This document shows, in pieces, positions 3,189-60,602 of a stretch of 64,000 nt of DNA. Each line of letters starts with the position of its first letter. Within the stretch, counting starts at the first letter, position 1. The notes under the pieces are model-generated. The model was not told the DNA's origin, searched no databases, and saw nothing but the letters and a program-made list of their open reading frames with translations. The translations under genes and the position numbers were made by a program. Source of the DNA: Pelomyxa schiedti (taxonomy: Eukaryota > Protista > Evosea); assembly GCA_020536535.1 (NCBI GenBank), contig JAHLWZ010000511.1:1-64000 (forward strand), read 5' to 3'.

Positions 3189-6050
3189 ATGAGCCAACCA
3201 AACAGTAGTAGAGGTACACAAGTGGGAGGAGTAATAACAACCGATGGTGCAACAGATTATTCAGGTTGAGTCATTTTGATACCTTTCGCGAATTCTTACT
3301 TCTTCTTGTGACAGGTAAAAATCTTTCAAGCTGTGACAAAGGTGCTTCTGGCGCTGGGGTGGATTATGCAGTAGGTGAGGGGTTGCCCCAGACTGGTGGT
3401 ACTCCTGGGCAACCAGCAAGCACGTTCTACCCCTACAACATGTCTGGCTTCAGGGGGGCCGCACTTGTCATAGCTAACTCCGAATATGTGAGGTTACCCA
3501 ATCTTAATGGATGTGTCCATGATGGAGCCCTGGCTGCTGCAACTTGGAGCAAGCTTGGTTATCAAGTGGAATTAAAACAAAACCTAACTGCAGAGGGCAT
3601 AAAGTGTGCTATTGCTGAACTGTGCAACCGAGCCGTCAAAGAGTGGGACTCTGTTGTGGTGCACTACTCTGGTCATGGCACCAGGGTGCCCATTACATAC
3701 GAAGGATGTACCCATGGAAAGAGTAATGACGTGGACGATGCTGTGATTGGTGTTGACGGTGACGCCAACGCTGGAGTGAGTGTGAAGGAAATACTGGATC
3801 GTTTCATGCCCAAAGTAGCCCCCCTGCTTGCTGCAAGGCCTAAGATCTTTGTATTTGATTGCTGCAGAGGGGCCGCAGCAGAGAAGGCTTGTCCTCGTGG
3901 GGGTACCGTGGTAGACAACCACCTTGCATCGGTGGTGGCAACACTGCCCGACTACGCCGACATGGTGATAGGCAATGCCTCCCGCCCATACCACCTAGCG
4001 TTTGAGACCAAAGGAGCTGGGATCTACAGTGGGACTCTGTACGGGTGCATGGATCAGAACATGTCCTCTAGTAACCCCGTCGACCTGCTACGGGTTCTTC
4101 AACTTACAAATGACACAATAGCACAGTCTTCTCAAGAAAAGAACCTCGTACATCAGAGCCCTAACTTCTGCAGTTACCTCAGGAAGGATGTGTATGTCGG
4201 CTCCAGGGAAGTGCATGCAGAATCAGCACGCGGCTCAGTTCCAATCGAAACCACAACAAGCACCAGCATTGAGGTGGGTGCTTCAAAGCCCCGTGAGAAC
4301 AAACGACCTGTGCCCCAACATTCGGTATTTGTGTTCAGTGACCTGCACCTTGGTGCTTTTCCGCCTGTACGTGACCCTGCCAAATGGGAGCAACGTGACC
4401 TTCCCGATCAAAATGTTGCGTTACTCCAGGCACAACTGAACAAGTGGAATTCAGAAATCTGGTTTCTCACAATTACTCTTTTTTTTTTTTCTAATGTTGA
4501 GTTGCAGTGGGCTGTCATTATCAGTGGAGAGAACTGTTGTTATGAATGGGGACATATTTGACTTTTGGGCACAAGTATTTCCCCCTCCCCTTTTTATCTT
4601 CACTCAGGAGCCCTTCCTTATTCTTCTTTGGCAGCCTCTTGATGTGCTGTTTACAACTATAAGTGACATAACATCTGAAGAGACTATGGCCGTCATCCCT
4701 GAGTGGGGTCAACACCTTACTTTGGCCTGTCACCTTTTTAAGGATACAGTCCTTCAGTTGCATGTTTGTTTTTTTTTTTTTTACTTTGGAATTTTTTTTA
4801 CTTTGGCTTTTTTAAAACATAACTTGGCACAGAAAACAGGAGTTAAGTTTATTTACGTTAAGGGGAACCATGACATGACCGTTACGGAAGTTCAGCTGCA
4901 AGAATTCTTTGGTGAAGTTCCCATTGTGGTAAAGGAGGTGTGTTCTGTCATTGCACTGGCTACAGCCACCTTCCTCGTCTTTGCTCCTTCACTGTTCTAA
5001 CTTCTGTCAAGGATTGCCACCTTCTGCACCTGCAAAACAAAAAATACATTCGGTTTGAGCATGGGCACGCAAAGGACGCATTCAACGCCCCTGTGAAAGA
5101 TAAACACCTCCGGTGCTTGGATATCCTCCCTATTGGGTATCTTATCACTCGTCTGCATGCAACGAACTTTGAGCAGACCAGCTCTGTAAGGGACATCGTA
5201 CAAGAAGAAATCTTGGTTTGATGGAGACAATTTCCATTCGGAATTACCCACTTCATTTCCAGAGACTGGTGAAATCCGGGCTTCCAACCTCTTTAGGCGA
5301 TATACTAAGAACCATCATCAAATGTACTGTTGAAGCTGTGTCAGGAAAGAAAATTGCACAGTTGGCTGAAGAGCAAATCAAAACACCACAGGGGATCATG
5401 ACCGTTGTGTGTAACACACTCCTTCTTTGTCATCTATGTATCACCAATCTATCCTCCCCTGATAGGGTCGCGCACTGCCACTGCTGGAATACGCTATGGT
5501 GTCACAAGTTGAATCGGTACGAGCCTATGTAGTAAATTAAGAAAACCAAGTAAAACAAAACAAACCATCAACGAAAAAGATGCTTGGGCCAGAATTGGAG
5601 CCTCGGTGTGCTGAAATAACGAAAAAAGCCAAGCACAAGTTTATGGAGTTTTTGCTCAGTGCGCACCCTCTTCTTCCACTGCTTGCAGCTTGTTTCTTTG
5701 ATGAAAAGTATCCAATCCACTCCTCTTTTACAACTCACAGTCAATACTTCTAGCTATGGACACAGCCTGTTGCAGAATGACGCAGAAATAGAAGCTATTG
5801 TCTTTGGTCAGTAGTGAACTGCATGCAATGCACAGTGATTTCACACACTTTTAGGGCACACCCATGAGTGCTACAGTGATAGCCTGAAGCATCAGCAGTA
5901 TTTCAATGATGGTGCCTGCTGCAAAGGTGTTTCGGCAATCCAGCTAGACATCCGGGAATCCAAGGTTGATATTTTGTCTTGGAAACCTCCTCTCCCAGCT
6001 CAAACCTGTTTTTTTTTTTGAAGGTTCATGGATCATTTCGGGAGGACTGA
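3189..6050 (+). CDS. Caspase-fold peptidase C14 (paracaspase/orthocaspase-like) fused to a calcineurin-like metallophosphoesterase
   Basis: Protease motifs AALVIANSEY, HYSGHG (His), FVFDCCRG (Cys), AFE and HQSP. The same ORF continues into FVFSDLHLG. Spliced exons then give NGDIFDFW, VKGNHD, RFEHGH and VFG|HTH, i.e. all five metallophosphoesterase motifs. ATG at 3189; likely stop TGA ending at 6050. Confidence 0.85.
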
Positions 6051-29334: not shown

Positions 29335-30801
29335 TTAGTATTTGCCTTCTCTGTTGCGCTTCTGGGTGTTGGTGGGAGCAGGGATCATGAGTCTCTTGCA
29401 CCTTATGGTCCTGGTTATGGTGGTGGGGGTCCCACTTCCAGCACTGTCAGCTGCAGCACTAGCAGTGGTAACAGTGGCAGAATTGGGCTCAGTGTTGATT
29501 GGGGTACCTGTGTCAACATGCCAGTGGGGAACCCCCTCTGTGCAACCATCACTGCTCAAACCACTTTCAGAGGCGGTGGCTGCTCGTATTTCCTTCCACT
29601 CCAGTTTTCCTTGCCGGTCTTTACTTGGTGTCTTTGTGATGTGCTGCTTTGATGCAAAGACAGCCTGAAAAAACTGACGTAGACCTGGCCTTTCAAGAAC
29701 CACTGGGGGCAAATGCTTTTCCTTGACCTTGCCATGCAGTTGTGAATACAAACTGCTGAGCGCCCCAGATTCTGCGTAGGTGCAATAGCAGATGTTGAGT
29801 TGGAGTGCACTTAACATTGCACCTTTCCACACATTGCCTGGTCGTGGACACCCAAGTATATTGGGAAGACCTGTGCTACGGTACAGAGCGTAGCATCCCA
29901 AACATGGTCTTTTTGTGCCAGCAACAAGGCCATCAGGGGATGTCACACACTGCAAAATTTCAATAAACCTTTGCTCTGCATGGATGCCTGGGCGGCCATG
30001 AACACAATGCAAAGAGTCAGGATTCAATTGTTGCAGTGTATCCAAGATGCTAGGAACAACTGGCTGTGAGGGATCAATGGGATTGAATTTATTGTCACAT
30101 GTTGCAGAGACCGTGAGAGATGGCCCATGTGGTGTGGCTTTAAAGACTTTGAATATGGCAGCTATGATTCCCATGTCTCTCTCTGATGCACCTTCCCAGT
30201 AGCCCTTCCCACTTGAACGTTCTTCGAAGAAGGCCATAGAACGGTAAAGCTTTTTAAACATGCGGATAAGATCTGATTTGAACCCCCCAATGCCGGGCAA
30301 GGTACTATTCCGAACATCCATGCCATCTTGCATTAGAGTGTAGCCACCACTCTTAATTCCACTGAAAATCGTGTTTGCACCCTTTGTATCATTTGCAGCC
30401 AGAAATACATGGTACCTGCTGCTATCAGGGGTTTCTCCTAACTTCAGAACCATCATCTGGAGTTCATCTTCTTCACAGCCCCACGCGATTTTTGCCCAAT
30501 ATAAAAGAAAAGTGCACATGTGTCGCATGAACTGGCAGGCTCTTCGGTTTGAATAAGAAGCAGGTGTGCGCTCCACCCTGTCTGATGCCACGTATCGCCC
30601 TGGTTGGTCCCTCCCCTTTTCAAAATTATCCACCACACTCGCCTTCAGATCTTCCGTCAGGTCCTTTGACAGATACTCACAACTGCGGACACGTTCCTCC
30701 AGGGCCGCAATGAGCTTGACCACTGTGTCACTTATCACCCTGTCGTCGACCGTATCGTCTACCGTTTCACCTACAGTTGTTTCTCCGTCGCTGTCGTCCA
30801 T
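29335..30801 (-). CDS. Intronless zinc-dependent nucleic-acid/nucleotide deaminase-fold protein (OTT_1508/toxin-deaminase-like), 488 aa
   Basis: GIHAEQRF (HAEQ at 29971-29982) and VAGTKRPCLGCY (PCLGC at 29893-29907) match the HxE...PCxxC motif. Upstream VFLAAND strand. Confidence 0.8.
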   Translation of the reverse strand: MDDSDGETTVGETVDDTVDDRVISDTVVKLIAALEERVRSCEYLSKDLTEDLKASVVDNFEKGRDQPGRYVASDRVERTPASYSNRRACQFMRHMCTFLLYWAKIAWGCEEDELQMMVLKLGETPDSSRYHVFLAANDTKGANTIFSGIKSGGYTLMQDGMDVRNSTLPGIGGFKSDLIRMFKKLYRSMAFFEERSSGKGYWEGASERDMGIIAAIFKVFKATPHGPSLTVSATCDNKFNPIDPSQPVVPSILDTLQQLNPDSLHCVHGRPGIHAEQRFIEILQCVTSPDGLVAGTKRPCLGCYALYRSTGLPNILGCPRPGNVWKGAMLSALQLNICYCTYAESGALSSLYSQLHGKVKEKHLPPVVLERPGLRQFFQAVFASKQHITKTPSKDRQGKLEWKEIRAATASESGLSSDGCTEGVPHWHVDTGTPINTEPNSATVTTASAAADSAGSGTPTTITRTIRCKRLMIPAPTNTQKRNREGKY

Positions 30802-30950
30802 ATGGCCAATATCGTCCTCTGAGGTTTTTTATTTTTCCACGTGTTTTCCTGGAGTTTGAACCGAACTACTTTCCTGTGGTTTCGCTTCTATCAGTCCAAT
30901 CAAATCAAGGGAAATCACAAAAATTTTTTTTTCCGTGTACGTCAACCCGC

Positions 30951-33900
30951 ATGGACGGAACTGGTAATACTGTAAGCAACAGCGGAGGTACCAGTGCGGC
31001 AGCTACCGTAACCGAGGTGGCCACCACTGGAAGGAAACCGATGCCGGGGGGAGTAAACTGTGGTCCTTTCTTCTTGCAGCTCGCTGCAAGGGTGGAAGAA
31101 GTCACCAACAGGGGAGGGGCAACCCCGCTGCAACTGGCTGAGTTTATCCAGTTGGTGGTCCCCGGTAGGTTCAGCAGGCACGGCGGAATGCTGTTCCACA
31201 TGTTTCACAAACTTTTGGAAATACTATGCACTTCCAGCACCAACAGCGGCACCGGCACCGACAGCACCAGCACGACGAGCAGCAGCGTCAACGCTGCTGT
31301 TATTGCTTTCCTGCCATCCAACATCACAGCAGAGATCACTGGCCCTGAGCATGTTAGGTTCCTGTTTGACATAGCAGCTGTTCCTTGCACCAACCCCCGC
31401 TTTGCACTGCATGTTTTTGCTGACAGGAAGGGCTTGCAGGTTGCCCTGGGACCAGCAGACCCGGGCAAGTTCTGCCTGGACCTTGGGGATGTGGTGCGTT
31501 CAGTGGGGTCCTTAGTTGGTGGGCTGGGACAGGTGGTCACAGGTGCTGATGCAACTAACCCTGCTGATATACTGCCACAAGAAATCAAAGATTTGCTCTC
31601 TAACATCACAGTAACAGACTTCTACATTGGAACCACTGAAAAAATGGTGCCTGTATTCAAGCTCACCCTTGAGTACAAGCGCCCACATGAGATCTGGTCA
31701 CTCAAGCTGGAGAGTATTACTCTCAAATTGTGCATTAGGTACTACAATGACACTATATGCTCTGGTGGAAAACTCAAGCTGCAAATGGAGGTTAACCCAA
31801 ATGAGAAGCTCTTCCTCAGTGCAGCAATTCCAAGTCTCAGTGGGCCCTGGGTGTTCCGGGTGAGGTCCCACTGGGAATATCCAGTAAACTTTGGAAGTCT
31901 AGTTGCAGGTCTCATAACTGACAAAGATCTGCCTGGTTGGATAACAAAAAGGCTGCCAGAGATAAGTGACATCAAAGGAAAGCTGGTTGTTGGTGGGGGC
32001 ACTCCCTTTAGCTTTTATTTTAGCATAACCAACATGAGGACTCCCTGGCAACCAATAAAGCCTGATGAGATTGGTGGTTCTAGCGTTTTATTGCGCAATT
32101 TTGGACTCACTGTGGGGAGGCGTAACAGCAGGTTCCACCTTGCATTTGCAGCTTTTTTGGATATTGGAGACATCTCCATCCCCCTTATCTTCAGTTCCAG
32201 TGCATCTGGCCAGCTCCAGCTCTGCTTGGTTTCTGGTGACGAGCCCTTCAAGATAAATGATCTGGGGGACCTCACATTGCCTGGTGGGCAGAAGGTTGGA
32301 AGCCTGGCTGGCATAGAAGACATTTTAGACTGGTTTCAGGAGCTGGACATCAGTATTGACACCTTCCAGCTCAATGTGATCCCGTTTACTGTCAAGTCCT
32401 TTGAGTTCCAGGTCAGCAGTCATGGAACAAAGACAATCTGGGACTACCTGACAATTTCAAACATGCTCTGGCAGCTTCAGGTCGACTCCCCCTTCGATGG
32501 CACAGCACGGAAAGTCAGATGGAATGCCAGCATTTCCTTGTCCATTCCTGGAGTCAAGTCCTTGGTGCTGGCGGGCTCTTGCACTGACAAGGGGTGTACA
32601 GTGCGAGGTTCAATTGAGGAACTGTCTATTGTGGATCTCCTTGAAGGCTTTGGGCTGCCCTCACTTGACAATTTGGGGTTTGATGTTCGGGCAATCACAA
32701 CTTTTAGGAAGATCTCTGCTCAGTTCTCCTTTGGAGGCCCTACAACACAAAGGGTTTTTTCTCTCAAAGGAGAACTTGGTGGCATTGTTTTCCAATTCAA
32801 AAGGGCATACTCTACTGCAGGAACCCACACCTCCATATCATTCAATCGAATTGAGAGGCTTCTTCTGTTGGTTAACCTGTCACTGGAAGATTTAGAAGTT
32901 AACCTCAAGTACACATCAGGAAAGCACTCAGCATGGAGCCTTCAAGGTTGCCTGCACATGGTGAGCCCTCACAGTGTGATATTGACAAACCTCGCGGAAT
33001 ACATGCATTTCACTGAAGATCCGAAAGTGGTCATTGAGTACACCAATGGCAGTGTTTCCATCAGGCCAAAGGTGGTACCACCATCAATTAAGCTCCTTAA
33101 GGGTAGTGTTGTTATAAGGGATATCGACTTGCAGCTGAACCCAACAACCCCATCAGTTTCACTGTCATGCAAGCTTGACCTCAAAACCCTGCAGGACCTC
33201 ATCAAGTGTGATCTCAGCTTTCATGGTTCTGCCAAGGTGTCTCTGAGACAACCCATCTTCAGGGGGGAATTTGGCCTGCAGAGCGACTGTGGTGTCAGGC
33301 TTCTGAAGGGACTGTGGTTCAAGGAGTTGTTTTTGTCAATCGAAGATGAAACTGTTGGCTTCAAAGGAGCAATGACTGTGGGAAAACCTCCAGAAGAGGC
33401 ATCGGAGCTGGACAAGATTGAAGTGTCTGCCCTGATTGGGCCTGAGCTGATAGACACTGTATTCAAGGGTATGTTCCCCCCTGGTGTACCCTTGACGATC
33501 CCTGACTGCTTGGACAAGTTCACTGAGGGGGAATTCCAGATTCATGATCCACTGAAGGGGATCATGTCCCCATGCATACTGTCTGGATACTGTGAGCAAG
33601 ACATACGTGAATTCTTTTTGTCTGCCAGTAAACTTGGAGTGGCGGTGCTGCCATCCAGCACTGACTGCCCACTTCCACCAATCATTGTGCAATTGTGGAA
33701 TCAGGTGCGGCAGCCCAAGCAAGGCAGTGCAGAATGTAGGCCTCTTGACAGGCCCTTGTTGGTGGAATTCAAGCCAAAGGAATTGAAGTTTGGTTTGTGC
33801 TGCAAGCTTGAGATCCCCCTGTTCCACTTCAAGGCAATTGTGGATGTCACTTTTGGATTGGAGTATGGCTTGAGTGCAAAGGGGTTCATGTGGCCCCTGC

Positions 33901-36900
33901 GTGTGCCTCACAGTAATATTGGTCCAATTCCAGCAGGTTCTTTGCTGGAGATCACAGATTACCATCAAATTATGGGACCTTATATTTCACTCCAGCTTCC
34001 CGGCTTGCTTACATTCTTCAAACCTGCAGCACTTGAGACCACAGGACTAGCATTCAGTGGTCGTGTTAGACTGTTCAATTGCCTGGAGTCAAGCATCTTT
34101 GGGAGGCTTGATAGAGATGGCCTTATCTTTGACTTCAGGCTGCAGCTGGACAACTGGGCACACACATACCATATACTGGATACCAGAATCTACATCCGAG
34201 TAGGCAGCAATGGATTCACATTCAAGACACACATTGCCATCAATGTGGACACAGATAAAATGGACCTGGGTCCCCTCAATCACCTCAAGTATCTCATTCC
34301 CTCATTCTTTGCCAGTGCCAGTGTTGAATGCTCTTCAAGCTTCACTGAAGGTAATTCTGTTTTGAGGGTGAACGTGCAGCTCAACTTCCTATCATTCCAT
34401 GTTGAGTTCAACCTGGACTGTGAGGCCCTCTCCTTTAGGGACATCCCAAAGGCCATTTTGTTAGAGCTTCCAAAGCAACTGTACCGCCAGGCAAAAAATA
34501 TTCTGGCTGGCCTGGCAACACAACTGGGGGATGCTGTTGTGTCTTTTATTGATAGAGTGAAATCTCTTGTGGAGGAAGGTCCAAACCTGCTGCAGAGAGG
34601 AATCGCTAAAATCTTGGGGCTTGACAACAACAGCAAAAGGCTCAGGGAGATAGACTTACAGATCATCCAACAGATCCAATGCATAAGGGAAGCAGTGAAA
34701 ACACAGCAGCGGGACCTTGCTGAGAGCCGCCTTGAGTTTGCAAATACAAGGTATATGGCTGAACAAAACCAGCAAGACATTGCAGAACTTAAAAGAGAAA
34801 TGGAAGGAAAAGTAGATTCACTGAATCAGCGCATTAACGAAACCAACAGTAAGCTCCAAGCAGAAATCACAAAAAACACCAAGGCACTCCAGGACCTCCA
34901 GTGTGAGATGCTTGAGCTGCACAAGCAGACAATGGGAGAAATGAAAAAGAAGTTCAGCCAACTGGTGCACCGCATTGAAGTTGTGGACTTCAACTCACTG
35001 TGCATGAACCTTGAGTACCAGCTGACAGGGATACGAGGCCCATGCCTGCAGCTGCTAAACAACATTGATGACCCAGATTATTTTTCTCGGCAGAGGCCCT
35101 TCCTGGAAAACATGACAACACAAATAATGCAGCTGTCAGCATCCCTCCTGGGAGCATGCTTGGGTGGCAAGCAAAAGTCTCTCTTTGAACGGTATTATGA
35201 CCTAATGCTGATGCAAAAAAGCACAGCAGCCATTGAATCAATAACTGAGAGGTACCAAGACATCATCCAGTACCTCGTGCAGCACATGAAGATGGCACAG
35301 CTTATGGAGTTTCTCAGCCGATTTCCTCGTGTGGAAGATGCTCTTCATCAGCTGCCCTCTGGCCACAAACTCAACTCCCACCTGGTATTGGTTGTTGCAG
35401 AGGCCCATGGGTTCAAATACATCAAGCATGGGGTGAACAGAGGGATTTTAAAACTGGAATCTGCTCCAATGGGAGTTACAGGGGTAGTCTCTGGGAGGTT
35501 GGATTTCATGGGTACCCCAGAAGACAGGAAAGAGCGGGATACCTTTGTGGGGGGGATGAAAACCACAGAGAACAACATAGAAGAAGAAACCCATGCACTG
35601 TGCTTGCGCCACAGCTCAGGGTCCTGCTTGGTGGGTGGCAGCACTCCTCCTGATCCAGGGGCCCTCTCTGCCAATTTGAAGGTTCAGCTGGAGGAACTCA
35701 CGTACCAGTGGGACATGCAACTAAAGCCCCTGTCCGCGGAAATGGAGAATGTGATGTTGCATGGAAAGGGCACACTCACCTTTTCAAACAAGAATGAGTT
35801 CCGAGGTGTCTGGGACAGCAACCAGGTGCAAGGCGAAGGCGCCTACTTCTTTGCTGGCTCCTGTGACCCAGTCTGGCAGGGCTACTGGTCCCAGAAGTCT
35901 GCAAATAATGCCAAAGGGGAAGTGGAGATGGAAATCAAGTTCAAGTTGCATCCGTTCTTTGGGAATGGTGTGTTCCGGGGCACCTGCTCCAACATGCTTC
36001 TCCCAAATGGAAAAGGAACAATTGAATTCGGCGGAAACAGCTACATGGGCATGCTGGAATCTGGACATTTGCATGGGGAGGGGCAGATGCACTGGGCAAA
36101 TGGAACCACATACACAGGGAGCTGGGAGAACAACCAGAGGAGGGGAAAAGGTAAAGCATGCTTTCCTGATGGTCGCTGCTATGATGGAGACTGGCTGGAG
36201 GATAAGCCTCATGGTTATGGAGCACTATACTGGCCAAGTGGTGACTTTTTCCAGGGTGAATTTCAGAATGGCTGCAGGAGTGGACAAGGCACGCTGTGCT
36301 TCCATGGTGACGGCCACTACCAGGGGGATTGGGTGGCAGACCAGATGCATGGACATGGTGAACGGGTCTGGGGTAATGGCATTGCATATGTGGGCAATTG
36401 GGACCACGGGCTTGCATCTTGCATAACAGATGAAAAGCTTCAAAGCCTTTTGTCTTGTTATGAGGATATGAAAACCACTGTTTTGGAGGGGAAGCTCAGC
36501 GAAAGTAACAAGAACCTCGCTAATGCGCTGGATAGCAAACAGTTCGACCTTGTGGAGGGATTCCTGGAAGCGGGTCCGACACAAAAGAAGAACATTGGCC
36601 AAGTGCAAGCCTGGGTGTCAAGGAAAATGGAAGAGCTTAAGCAAGCAGTGCAGTGGTGGCTACCACTTGAGCAGAATGCTGCCGCCAATGCAGCATCAAT
36701 TGCTGATTTATTCAAGTCACTTCAGATGGTGTGTAACTTCCTGCAAGGAACCCCTGAGAGCCCAAGGGCGGCACCAGTAATTATAGCTAAGTTCAAAAGT
36801 GACCTTGGTAATTTACAGCGTATTGTGAATGACGTCATTGGTGCAACTATTAATCAAGTGCAAGGACTCAGCAAACAAGGTTTTTCATTTTTATTTGTCT

Positions 36901-39075
36901 CTTGGCTTAAATTTTTGTGATATTCAGGGCGTGTGGCAAAGGCAATTGAACATGTGAAAGTTCTGAAGCAGGTCCAACTCTCTCTGACAGTGGCGAACGT
37001 CTTGCAAGAGCCAGGGATAGCTGCTCTACGTACCCTTCTGGATGATTTTCTGGATGAAACGAAGTTGCTGGACGAAAAGATAAATGAGGCAACACAGAAT
37101 GGCATCGACTGTGCCAAAATCAACCTGTTGTTTGGCACTGCGGGAGGTGAACAGGTGAAGCAAAGGGTGGCCGATGTGGTAAAAATGAAGTGCAGCGCAA
37201 TTGAGGAGCGGCCAGGAGCGGAGTTCGAACTGGAGGATCTGGCAGGTTCACTGCTAACACTGAAGCCGGAGCTTTTGAGCTCCATCAATGCTGTTATTGG
37301 CAAAGCTAAAGACCGCATGAGGAAGAACAATGAAAACCGGGAGCGGGTTGTGCTTTCTCTGTTCAACGATAGATATGCAGAAGGGGTGCAAAGAGAACTC
37401 CTGAAGCTCAAAAAGGAATGGGACAAGAGTGTCTATGATAAACTGATTCTTGATCTGACTGGATCCTTCAACCAACTGTGTGTGGACAGGGCAAGCGTGT
37501 CCCCAAGTTCGTTTGAGTTCCTCTGGAAGGCCTCCAGTCTGATACAAGACCTCCCTTCCTCTGAGTTCACAAAGCTCTGCCAAGAGTTTCTGAGTATTTC
37601 CCTTGATATGATAAAAAAGATCCAGAAGGAAACGGAACCCATAGTCACCGCCGAATTCAACAAAGTTGCTTGCTTGCCAGGGCCCAAACAATCACAGCTC
37701 ACTGGATTGGGACTTGTGCTCTTCATATTGCCGTATTGTACCAGACAGGATGGTATATTTTCAGGGGATCCCCTTCGAGAGAAAGCTTCCAGCATGGTTA
37801 GAGAGTGTACCGCCCTGATGGAAGCCATAAAGAACCAGGCTGAGAAACTCCACAATGCTTTCCATTCTTCTCTAAGTTGCGGCAACTTCTTGGAGGTTAC
37901 AACCGTCCTGCCTGATATAAAGAGGTTGGAGTTGGGTCACAAGTGTCTGCAACCACTGGTAGCCCAGCTCCAGTTGAATCACCCTGCTTTTCCCACGTTC
38001 CAGGAATCTTGCAATAAAGCCAAGGAACAACTCGCCAAGATGTCTGCTGAATGCGATTATAAACTGGATGTTCACACTCCTGCCAGCTTTGCAGAAGTTG
38101 AAGTGATCTGGAAATCTGAAGCTGCAGTGCATCACCTGTTCAAGGAGGTACCTGAAACCACAGTCGAGTTTGAGATAAAGCAAAAGGTGACGAAGTTTTT
38201 CAATGAAAGGCACGCAACTGCTCTGAACCTATGGGATGCAGAGCCCAGGAATTATGCAGCAATAAACGAACTCCTGGTTCTCTTCATAAACGGCAGGTCT
38301 CTCTGTGGCACTTTGAACATTGGACCTCCCCAACAATTCATGGAAAAAGTGCTGGAGGGAGTAAGGACCGCTGCACTGCCACCTGTGCCAGATCCAAGCG
38401 AAGTTGCGAACATGCTTCGTGACGTTTCGACCCACAGCTGCTTCACGATAATGTGTGTGGACGAGTCTGGCTCAATGGACAGAGATCCCTGGATTTCCCT
38501 GAAGACCGCTGTCGAAGCCTTTTGCACCCGGCGCATCTCACAATGCGCACAAGCTTGTCTCCCTTGTGAAGATAGGGTCTGGGTGATTGGGTACACAGAT
38601 AGTGCCTTCCACCGAATACCAAGTTCACTCGAGGCAGAACCTGAACGTCTTGTTTCCGGACTTAGTTCCCGCCTCACTCACTTTGATGGTGGGATGGCGT
38701 CTTTCCAAGCTCCACTTACTGCTGTCAAGCAAGTATTGGATGGTCCAGGCAATTGGAGGTTCATCAGGCCTCCTCTTTTTTCCCCCTCAACTCACTGTTG
38801 GAAATAGGCCTGTTGCGGATATGATGAAAGTGCTTCTGTTCACGACTTATAGCAAGTGTGACGACGGTGATGCCGAAATGCAAAAGCTGTACAACGCACA
38901 CCCAGACTTGAAGGTGTTTGTTGTTGGATTTGGGGAGGGGTGTGATGCCGAAAGGCTCAAAAGTCTGGCTGCACAAGGTCATGGCTCCTACTTCGCCGGA
39001 CTAGACTCGGCAGCACTTATGAGAGTGTTTGACACTTTGGCTACTGCTATCTCTGCCCCGGTGATGTTTGCTTGA
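30951..39075 (+). CDS. Giant multidomain protein (at least 2675 aa): about 1000-aa beta-rich region, coiled coil, helical domain, MORN repeats, helical region, C-terminal vWA
   Basis: Exons 30951-36879, 36928-38758 and 38808-39075 join in frame (8028 nt). MORN repeats YxGxWxxxxxxGxG at about 35760-36410. vWA motifs CVDESGSM, VWVIGY, VLLFT and VFVVGFG. Confidence 0.85.
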
Positions 39076-40716: not shown

Positions 40717-41494
40717 ATGGTGCGAGCTGTTGCAATATACTCCAAAGACGTCTCCAAAACAGCTCCAATCGAACTCACACCAACATGGACATTCAATGAG
40801 CTTGCGAGGGCTATTTCCTCACAGCTGGGCTGGCAAGTGGGTTCGGTTTATTTTGGAAAACGCAAAAGGTTGTTTTCTACCACCACTGTTGAAAAGACTT
40901 TAGCAGAGTACCACCTTGCAAATGATGAAACAATGCTGTGTGTTGTCCTCGAATGTGACGGAGGTCGAGCTCAGATTAGTTTTTCCTCAGTGCCTAAGAT
41001 TCCCAGGTGTCGGTTTTGGCTTCTCCACAATGAAGACCATTAAGACCTGTTCATGGCAGCCTGCTCCCAAGTGGCGTAACCATATACCTGGTAATCTATT
41101 CCATTATCTTGATGTAAAGCTTATCAAGCCAAAGGTTTGAATCTGGAGGGAACATGTGCGTCACCCCTGTCTCAATGTGAGGCCTCAGGAAAGAGGGTCA
41201 TTGTACCTTGTGGTCTGGGCACGTTTGACATTGGGGAATGCTCCTCTGAGGCAAAATGCCCTATCTGTCATCAGTCTCTTGTTGTTGAATCGGTGGATAA
41301 CTGTGCTGTGAACAACTGGTGCGTGTCACGCAAATACTTGAGAAAACTAACTTGTGATAAGTCATTGGCAATACATTGGATCTACCAAAGGCCGGCGACA
41401 GGAAGATAGTGGAACAGTAGGAAATGAATGTGGTTGGTTTCCAACTGACACTGTTCAGTGGAGCTACCTCAAGATCACAACAAGAAGCTGCTAG
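40717..41494 (+). CDS. Ubiquitin-like domain (ending LECDGG) plus C-terminal Cys-rich putative Zn-binding domain, 215 aa
   Basis: Exons 40717-40963, 41007-41090, 41135-41318 and 41362-41494 (648 nt). Ubl features TFNELARAI, KTLAEYHL and GG, then APKWR...PGLNLEGTC...C...GLGTFDI...CPIC...NCHW. Confidence 0.75.
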
Positions 41495-41597
41495 AGTCAC
41501 AGTTAGCTGCACCAAGTCTAACCCCAATAACTCTCTGAAACGCTCCTGGAGCGAAGGTGTCTCAGACAATTTTATTTTTATTACAGTGACACCTGGG

Positions 41598-42669
41598 TTA
41601 ATTTCTTGTCACAGTAATAGTGGCACAGCAGTAGGAGTACTTTTCCAGGGGGACCATCATGGGTGAACCACCTCTTTCAGATACTTTTACTCCTTTTGTT
41701 GTTGTAACAAGGAGACTCCAACTACTGTGAGCTGAAACAGCTGCGAAGGGGTTTGAACATGCGGTTCCACATGAGCAGTTAGTGAACTCATATAGAACCT
41801 GCTGAACCCGGAAAGTTCCATAGCCATGAGTGGCAAAAATTGGCTTGCCACACCCACAGCAAATTCCTAAAGTGGTGAGGCCAACTGCATTGGTACAAAG
41901 GCCAAGCCTGGAGAGTACCCCAGAAAATTCAACAGAGTATGGCAGAGTGTCCACAATCTGCACGCACTGGGCAGTGGTTGTAGAGTTGAACGTTTTGGCA
42001 ACTGAGCAATTCACAAGATGAAACATATGGGAAAGGGACTGTTCCTTGCCAAGTTGTTGAACGAAGGCTTGGAGAAATGGGCTGCCCTCTGTGGTTCTCC
42101 AAGCATAGTGTGTTGGTGTTGTTGCGTAGGCAATAAAAAAGCAATGATCCACTGTGAAGTTCGTTCTCCCATCTGCCACCGCGAGGTTCGTTCTCCCATC
42201 TGCCAAAGGTGTATTTCCATTGCCCCTGCAAGCTTGAACGAGAATTATTCTAGGCTTACGGTCCAATGAACGGCAATTAGAAGTTCGGAACTGATCAGAG
42301 ACCCACTCCAACGGTACGGAAGAATCGTCACTACCATAAATCTGTGGTGACACGAAAGCAATTAAATCGAATGATTTTTTTGAGATAGAAAGTGACACAA
42401 CAAACCACGTTGTTGCCGCCATGGCTTGAGAGAATCAGAACGAGACAGCCCACCTGCGAGTAATCCTCTTTACTTGCAGCAGCGATCGCGCGCCGTATCG
42501 CTTCCCCCGTCAAGGCGCCAGCCGACGTGGACACGCTGAAGTTACGGTTCTCCAGTGCCGGGCGCAAGGCGTCTACGTCCCGCATGGCACCATCTCGCGT
42601 GTGCGTGTTACACACGATGTGGGCGCGTCCGTTCCATATGTCGTATGTTGTTTCACCTTCGCCTGTCAT
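41598..42669 (-). CDS. Animal-type caspase (C14A-like, QACRG) without a prodomain, with a C-terminal Cys-rich domain, 335 aa
   Basis: Exons 42406-42669 and 41598-42341. Motifs TRDGAMRDVDAL, LILSSHGG, FRTSNCRSLDRKPRIILVQACRG, FFIAYATTP and YAWRTTEGSPFLQAF. Confidence 0.9.
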
Positions 42670-59639: not shown

Positions 59640-60602
59640 TCAGAACACGAAGTCACTCAAAACAGTAGACAAGTGTGGTACCTGGTGCATCCCCTGCATA
59701 GATGCCTGCATGTCGTTGCATACGCCAGGCCACACTGTGCCCAGAAGTGAAGCACCAGGCTTGATGTATTTCAGGAGGTGTGCTGTTAACACAGAATTGG
59801 GGCGGATACTGTCACCTCCAAACGAACTGCGTCCAGGCTGGCAACCGTAAAGAATTGCCCACTCCGGTCGAAACTCCTGAGACCTGAGGTCTGCAACAAA
59901 CTTGGCAACAGAAGCATCGTCTGCAGCGTGCGCAATGTTCTCGGCTGGCGGTGTGGCTGTGGCTTGTTCCCCCACTGTTGTGGTCGTGATAATCGGTGCG
60001 CATATTCCCTTGGGAACGGCCTCCGAGCGAGTGGGAGAGAAACGGCACGCGTCAATCAGTGCCAGCACTCTCCCAGCAGCTTTTGGCTTTCCCACTTCAC
60101 CAAGGAACTTGATAATAACATCTCCGACGCGCACCTCATCTCGGTTGCGCATTTGAAGGTAGGTGTGTCCCCCTTCCTGACGACCGTGGCCAGAAAAATA
60201 TAACACCTAAGAAAAGGTGAAACAATGATGGTTTGACGAGAGGGAACGTACAACGCTGGCATCCTTCCCAGTACTTGCAATAGCCGTATCGATGAGGTTA
60301 TAGAAGGCGTTCGAGCTTACGATGTCATCTTCACCGATAATGGTGAAACCGCAAAGTTGAAGTGCTTCTTTCATCGCAGCAGAGTCCTCCATTGAATAAA
60401 GCTTATTTGTTGGGTCCTCGTTACCAATAACAACAGCAATTTTCGGAAAAGGCCCCACAGAGGGTGGAGTAGAAGAAGAAGAAGAAGAAGAAGGCTATGG
60501 GTTGTGAGCCAGGCTTCCAATAGAAAACAAGAGGAAGAATGAGAAAAAGACCTGTCCGTTAACCACTGCCCTCACTTCCACTGCGGAATTGGTGGTGTCC
60601 AT
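59640..60602 (-). CDS. Stand-alone caspase-fold peptidase C14 (paracaspase/orthocaspase-like), 286 aa
   Basis: Exons 60552-60602, 60252-60494 and 59640-60206. Motifs KIAVVIGNED, VLYFSGHG, LIDACR, AILYGCQPG, NSVLTAHLLKYI and HQVP. Confidence 0.88.

Follow-up and report, generated by a model that had tools for sequence, protein, structure and literature searches.

A convergent gene pair for a ubiquitin-like protein and a caspase in Pelomyxa schiedti, and a candidate cysteine-rich docking domain

The gene pair

Two convergent genes of the anaerobic amoeba Pelomyxa schiedti lie tail to tail in the window, by which we mean the whole 64,000-nucleotide stretch of DNA that was analysed (Table 1). One encodes a ubiquitin-like (Ubl) domain followed by a cysteine-rich domain, which we name CysD; the other encodes a caspase. 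Each is a genuine gene that is transcribed and spliced. The stop codons (41492-41494, plus strand; 41598-41600, minus strand) are separated by 103 bp, in agreement with the distance of about 100 bp given in an earlier note on this DNA, and all of the motifs quoted there were located in the sequence. Our Ubl gene model is the same as NCBI KAH3761714.1 (Pelo_6461), except for 29 extra N-terminal codons upstream in the latter. The caspase is deposited at NCBI as "caspase 7 [Pelomyxa schiedti]" (KAH3761715.1). Searches with the spliced models used single exons or the protein ids of the database (P0001, P0004).

The RNA evidence consists of contigs from one study, which indicate presence only. The third intron of the Ubl gene (41319-41361) is spliced in an RNA contig. 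Single-cell RNA contigs confirm splicing of the caspase intron (42342-42405), and the 5' end of the caspase transcript lies at about 42690. The Ubl and caspase transcripts stem from different single-cell libraries. Contamination with animal DNA is unlikely, given the short GT-AG introns, the single-cell RNA and the continuous DNA contigs. Just upstream of the pair, the window contains giant open reading frames (30777-39075, plus strand) that carry MORN-like repeats and end in a vWA-like region, and an open reading frame of 488 residues (29335-30801, minus strand) with no Pfam match.

Table 1. Features of the gene pair (positions in the window) and loci of the related chlamydial modules
Feature	Position	Strand	Description
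Ubl and long CysD gene	40717..41494	+	Four exons (40717-40963, 41007-41090, 41135-41318, 41362-41494); 215 residues from the ATG at 40717
Introns of the Ubl gene	40964-41006, 41091-41134, 41319-41361	+	Three short GT-AG introns needed for reading
Divergent ubiquitin-like domain	40717..40963	+	Pfam ubiquitin E 0.26; local Ubl profile P 0.003
LECD-GG in place of the LRLR-GG of ubiquitin	40948..40963	+	Candidate caspase site, putative cleavage; Asp codon 40957-40959
Long CysD	41007..41491	+	Beta sandwich with an F..APxWR extension at its N terminus, the GLNLEGxC motif and two pairs of conserved Cys
Spacer	41495..41597		103 bp between the convergent stops; Ubl transcript extends to at least 41531
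Caspase gene	41598..42669	-	Two exons (42669-42406, 42341-41598); 335 residues; almost no prodomain
Arg25	42595-42597	-	S1 residue, aligned with caspases
Catalytic His83 (SHG)	42421..42423	-	Alignment with caspases
Q124-A-C126 of QACRG	42228..42236	-	Catalytic Cys and S1 Gln; alignment with caspases
Inter-subunit linker	42168..42209	-	PLAD/G and AVAD/G, two Asp-Gly sites at which the enzyme probably processes itself
W169-R170	42096..42101	-	Invariant in the caspase alignment
Caspase tail	41601..41918	-	106 residues; probable divergent short CysD without the APxWR extension (family profiles, alignment, model)
Second intron of the NCBI caspase model	41867..41918	-	GT-AG; would shift the reading frame of the tail; no spliced RNA contig seen here
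Chlamydial CysD module loci	L033:6653-8993, L034:485-4047, L037-L040, L042:3473-10542, L043:2287-6581, L046, L047, L050, L053, L059		

The caspase

The caspase is closest to caspase-7 and caspase-3, which are its best matches in the PDB (E 6e-25) and account for all of the top 60, and is more distant from metacaspases and paracaspases. The His-Cys dyad is intact, with His83 and Cys126 at positions invariant among caspases. The S1 residues Arg25, Gln124 and Arg170, which we take to be the equivalents of Arg179, Gln283 and Arg341 of caspase-1, are also kept. Specificity for aspartate is thus predicted, and by these sequence tests the Pelomyxa enzyme would be classed as a true caspase (C14A). A short tandem duplication in the inter-subunit linker (42159-42205, minus strand) yields its two Asp-Gly sites.

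Among the 26 caspase-domain matches in the genome, QACRG was seen in this one only, and no CysD was found on the others within the flanks examined. A second caspase-CysD fusion or pair was not found by homologue searches either; since these rely on shared words and length windows, its absence is weak evidence. Word-based searches of viral, metagenome and genome contigs for the Ubl exon, the tail and close relatives of the caspase, which detect close relatives only, were likewise blank. No paper on Pelomyxa caspases was found in the literature searched, whose coverage is incomplete.

The window contains two further genes of the caspase family. The first (3266-4561, plus strand) has SGHG and DCCRG motifs and matches Pfam C14 with an E of 2e-32; the second (59640-60600, minus strand) contains introns and is paracaspase-like (SGHG, DACR). 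On other contigs, a caspase-like domain with SHG, AACRG and SYR (L006:1087-1995, minus strand) is possibly a second Asp-type enzyme, and another (L005:1171-2286, plus strand) has neither catalytic residue, its GHD being shifted and no Cys occupying the QACRG position.

The CysD family and the Ubl protein

The C-terminal part of the Ubl protein belongs to a widespread cysteine-rich family. Exon 3 of the gene finds 26 relatives at E values up to 0.001, which have in common F..APxWR, GLNLEGxC, a second Cys, GxGxF, CPxC and a terminal strand. The Ubl tail scores 103 bits against a family profile built without it. CysD is 105-130 residues long and mostly C-terminal, and its invariant residues are Cys, Gly and Pro. 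We distinguish a long form, which carries the N-terminal APxWR extension, and a short form, which lacks it. The two pairs of cysteines suggest that CysD may bind zinc.

The AlphaFold model of the long CysD is mostly beta and of high confidence (pLDDT 95.8). No structure in the PDB matches it above Z 4.7. This best match is a beta-gamma crystallin (rmsd of 3.0 over 78 residues), and many crystallins score between Z 3 and 4, values too low to assign the fold. No enzyme fold was matched in these PDB searches, which does not in itself prove that the domain is non-enzymatic. Pfam, NCBIfam and PADLOC contain no model for CysD, and the literature searched, of incomplete coverage, yielded no account of the domain or module. 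Rotifers, Mucoromycota, Pandoravirus and Barrevirus have structural relatives of the domain, in fusions with ubiquitin, RING, U-box or ADP-ribosyltransferase domains; a rotifer ADP-ribosyltransferase cluster matches the short CysD part (residues 21-133) with a TM of 0.68.

The N-terminal domain is a very divergent Ubl, which falls below the Pfam cut-off when taken alone. It is collinear from end to end with a ubiquitin-CysD relative (30% identity, E 8e-14), and this alignment places LECD-GG on the LRLRGG of the relative, as the earlier note had it. A second Pelomyxa CysD gene is located on another contig (L031:1453-2058; G000:C197). It is stand-alone and divergent, and has no CysD or caspase neighbour within 16 kb.

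The C-terminal tail of the caspase

The public model of the caspase differs from ours in this region. KAH3761715.1 contains a second intron (41867-41918), after which another frame is read and the cysteine-rich tail is lost. In favour of this model, the authors of the P. schiedti genome used RNA to refine their gene models (PMC8887013). The sole RNA contig over the region (41612-41945) is unspliced across the predicted intron, although it could be derived from DNA or pre-mRNA. Unspliced contigs account fully for the bin depths there and leave no room for another contig. The predicted intron has 52% GC, compared to 32-47% in the other four introns. The in-frame tail consists of 106 open codons and ends where the domain ends, and the alternative NCBI tail scores -2.7 bits against the CysD family profile. 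We consider the in-frame tail more likely than the spliced version, but not proven. If it is correct, the NCBI model hides the tail, and database surveys would miss it.

The two tails were proposed in the earlier note to align and share one domain, a similarity that becomes significant through the family profiles and not by direct comparison. Pairwise, the two are not significantly similar by BLASTP or phmmer (E 0.36, 0.48 and 0.058; 40 of 1000 shuffles were as good). Four CysD profiles built without Pelomyxa, however, match the caspase tail with 13.9, 12.6, 11.6 and 13.8 bits (P 1e-5 to 2e-6). No shuffle out of 10,000 beat the tail with the first and last profiles, shuffles with fixed cysteines included; two of 10,000 did so with the short-form profile, and these are the only two among the 40,000-odd over all four. 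Of 1352 peptides of the window, the caspase open reading frame scores highest after the members (E 0.014); among 3506 real peptides, its E values are 0.04-0.11. These scores of 12-14 bits compare with 60-148 for true members, and HHalign, the check suggested at the outset, gave a probability of only 17-25%. A short CysD fused to PARP, which is absent from the first profile, aligns with the caspase tail in the register originally read by eye (z 6.2, 0 of 2000 shuffles).

The tail has the Cys pairs and GYGTF, but their spacing differs and two registers are possible. TKG, listed earlier among the shared residues, is present in both tails and is not a motif of the family. One alignment (A2) proved too variable for pattern scans, and an Atlas feature search with the tail gave no match. 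Only with the family alignment supplied does AlphaFold predict a fitting fold, with the same order of strands and helix (pLDDT 86), and the top four viral matches of this model are the same four as those of the Ubl protein's domain; both results are partly circular. We conclude that the caspase tail is probably homologous to CysD. Since it starts right after the small subunit and lacks APxWR, it would be of the short, enzyme-type form.

The tails of the Pelomyxa pair are identical at 27 of 98 positions. The caspase tail is no nearer to its neighbour than to other members of the family (score rank about 26 of 38). A recent tandem duplication was rejected because the tail is not closer to the CysD next to it.

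CysD genes in Chlamydiota

CysD was found in 14 of 401 Chlamydiota genomes, in adjacent genes in eight of the 14 and as single genes only in the remaining six. As three of the eight were seeds of the search, the proportion among the others is 5 of 11, one of the five being in broken pieces. In operons seen in the DNA around relatives, a short CysD without APxWR forms the end of a PARP-like enzyme, whose gene immediately precedes that of a Ubl-like protein with a long CysD at its end. The short form occurs on PARP-like, trypsin-like, patatin and U-box proteins, that is on at least four unrelated types of enzyme or ligase, and the long form on Ubl proteins, often with a CaaX end. Sequence identity is 47% among short forms, 52% among long forms, and 25-28% between short and long neighbours, similar to that of the Pelomyxa pair. 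In 11 loci, the long-CysD gene has beside it a protease gene, which may or may not carry its own CysD; ten of these proteases are trypsin-like and one is thermolysin-like. Several of the loci are orthologous and thus not independent.

One genome of environmental chlamydiae (G001) holds 12 CysD matches, and one chlamydial patatin-CysD gene is split over two overlapping frames. A metagenome pair (L041:178-1455) consists of a coiled-coil CysD protein and, after it, a stand-alone long CysD that begins with Met-Gly, a possible myristoylation signal.

The chlamydial layout, with CysD on an enzyme and on the adjacent Ubl protein, matches the Pelomyxa pair and, as judged from sequence, points to a docking module that has not been described. 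The adjacency foreseen at other loci is seen for enzyme-CysD beside Ubl-CysD genes, in the eight genomes above, and not for the caspase, of which no second CysD locus was found. The suggestion of homotypic recruitment is supported in part. The chlamydial neighbours and the short, enzyme-type tail lend it independent support, but the C-terminal, all-beta fold with its cysteine cluster is unlike CARD or DED.

Proposed mechanism and alternatives

We propose that CysD is a small, non-enzymatic docking domain whose long form resides on Ubl proteins and whose short form resides on enzymes. The short CysD of the caspase would bind the long CysD of its partner, which we rate slightly above an even chance, and would thereby concentrate or hold the caspase in place of a CARD or DED prodomain. 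Once dimerised, the caspase may cut itself at the Asp-Gly sites of the linker. Binding of the partner could either activate or restrain the enzyme, with a possible role in defence or cell death. Whether the two genes form a coupled pair that docks through CysD is, in our judgement, evenly balanced. Several points count against it: the genes are convergent and not operon-like, no other caspase-CysD fusion was found, the second Pelomyxa CysD gene stands alone, the RNA-refined NCBI model splices the tail away, and the two transcripts come from separate single-cell libraries, so that co-expression is not demonstrated by them.

In a second, less certain step, the caspase may clip its partner at LECD/G and free the Ubl. 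An Asp before the di-Gly-like end is present in only one of 25 family linkers, that of the Pelomyxa Ubl. In 7521 residues of long open reading frames of the window, Hydrophobic-Glu-x-Asp-small does not occur and Glu-x-Asp-small occurs twice. A site of the type LExD/G fits caspases whose S4 pocket is open, and the Pelomyxa enzyme has a Pro where caspase-3 and -7 have the S4 Trp. Its own linker sites are of the type xxAD/G, unlike LECD/G. Cleavage is chemically plausible, as the Asp pocket is intact, but the idea derives from one sequence in a very divergent Ubl, and we regard it as tentative.

Old local shuffling is the alternative that survives best, and has a distinct though minor chance of being correct. 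A CysD copy would have been duplicated onto the neighbouring caspase, diverged, and now serve the caspase alone, in stability, metal or ligand binding, or localisation, with no interaction between the neighbours. In its favour, a quick and provisional tree groups the caspase tail with its neighbour and amoeboid relatives, with weak support (SH-aLRT 84) and a very long branch leading to the tail. Partner genes are also not known for many eukaryotic CysD proteins, and the second Pelomyxa copy stands alone. The family ranking argues otherwise, as the tail is not closest to its neighbour, and so does the recurrence in chlamydiae of the short-on-enzyme, long-on-Ubl layout with unrelated enzymes. 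It is unlikely that the tail resembles CysD by chance or is not normally translated, in which case the mature mRNA would be the NCBI model and the open frame a retained intron. The insignificant pairwise comparisons, the empty Atlas search, the predicted GT-AG intron and the ambiguous nature of the unspliced contig would fit, but the four profiles agree, the alternative tail scores negatively, the open frame ends with the domain, and the GC content of the intron and the bin depths favour an unspliced message. Least probable is a protease-inhibitor pair following a guard or antitoxin logic. Here Ubl-CysD would be a bait or brake docked on the caspase, with its LECD/G loop in the active site, and recognition or degradation of the Ubl would free the enzyme. 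This would fit the chlamydial long-CysD proteins, one type of which is found with several potentially toxic enzymes and often has a CaaX end, as a holder or anchor would, and the Pelomyxa Ubl has lost the Arg residues at the LRLR position, which in ubiquitin are read by ubiquitin enzymes, but the Pelomyxa partner has no CaaX (it ends in TTRSC).

The docking model can be extended, at present as a speculation that we think doubtful. CysD could be an undescribed heterodimerising adaptor of chlamydial symbionts, giant viruses and protists, which in Pelomyxa replaces the death fold and recruits an Asp-specific caspase to a Ubl whose LRLR-GG end has changed into a caspase site; the pair would then be a caspase switch of two genes outside animals. 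This locus offers a two-protein test of how caspases were controlled before, or are controlled without, CARD/DED adaptors. In the literature searched, we found no description of this unnamed domain family or of the recurring enzyme-CysD, Ubl-CysD and protease module of environmental chlamydiae.

Comparison with known systems

The arrangement resembles that of the effector-associated domains EAD1-10 of bacterial conflict systems, small, non-enzymatic terminal domains present on a core component (Ubl among those listed) and on an adjacent enzyme, for which homotypic coupling has been proposed (Kaur et al. 2020, PMC7159879; 2021, PMC8195603). Likewise, one CysD copy is on a Ubl protein and another on the adjacent enzyme in the chlamydial loci, and in Pelomyxa if the tail is a CysD. 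Trypsin-like and caspase-like partners are common to both. However, EADs are mostly helical, whereas CysD is modeled as a cysteine-clustered beta sandwich. By this beta-rich model, and with no Pfam or NCBIfam match, it is not one of the named EAD1-10 families. Adjacent CysD copies, unlike coupled EADs, are split into long and short forms and are not each other's closest relatives. The hosts differ as well, since CysD occurs in chlamydiae, protists, rotifers, fungi and giant viruses, without an NTPase core; chlamydiae are mentioned in neither EAD paper (PMC7159879, PMC8195603).

The Ubl protein is most similar to unnamed "ubiquitin / RING and ubiquitin domain" proteins of protists, rotifers, Mucoromycota, Pandoravirus and Barrevirus, in which a Ubl also precedes a long CysD (TM 0.83-0.92 in the Atlas, 0.85-0.87 in BFVD). 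Compared to these, the Pelomyxa Ubl is very divergent, ends in Asp-Gly-Gly, and is not accompanied by a RING or U-box.

True caspases are rare outside animals; non-animal ones have been reported from Reticulomyxa (Klim et al. 2018, PMC5982838). The Pelomyxa enzyme has the His-Cys dyad, the Arg/Gln/Arg S1 pocket and the linker Asp sites of the C14A caspases, including those of Reticulomyxa, but differs in its occurrence in an archamoeba, its probable C-terminal CysD, and the Pro at the S4 Trp position of caspase-3/7. No death-fold prodomain (CARD, DED, DD or PYD) was matched by Pfam in the Pelomyxa pair, and the models of the tail and of the partner are nearly all beta. Compared to the animal initiator systems caspase-8/FADD and caspase-9/Apaf-1, the extra domain is C-terminal and beta-rich, with no death fold, the catalytic domain is nearest to caspase-7/3, and recruitment is a proposal. 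As in these systems, a QACRG caspase with an Asp pocket would carry an extra domain in common with its partner.
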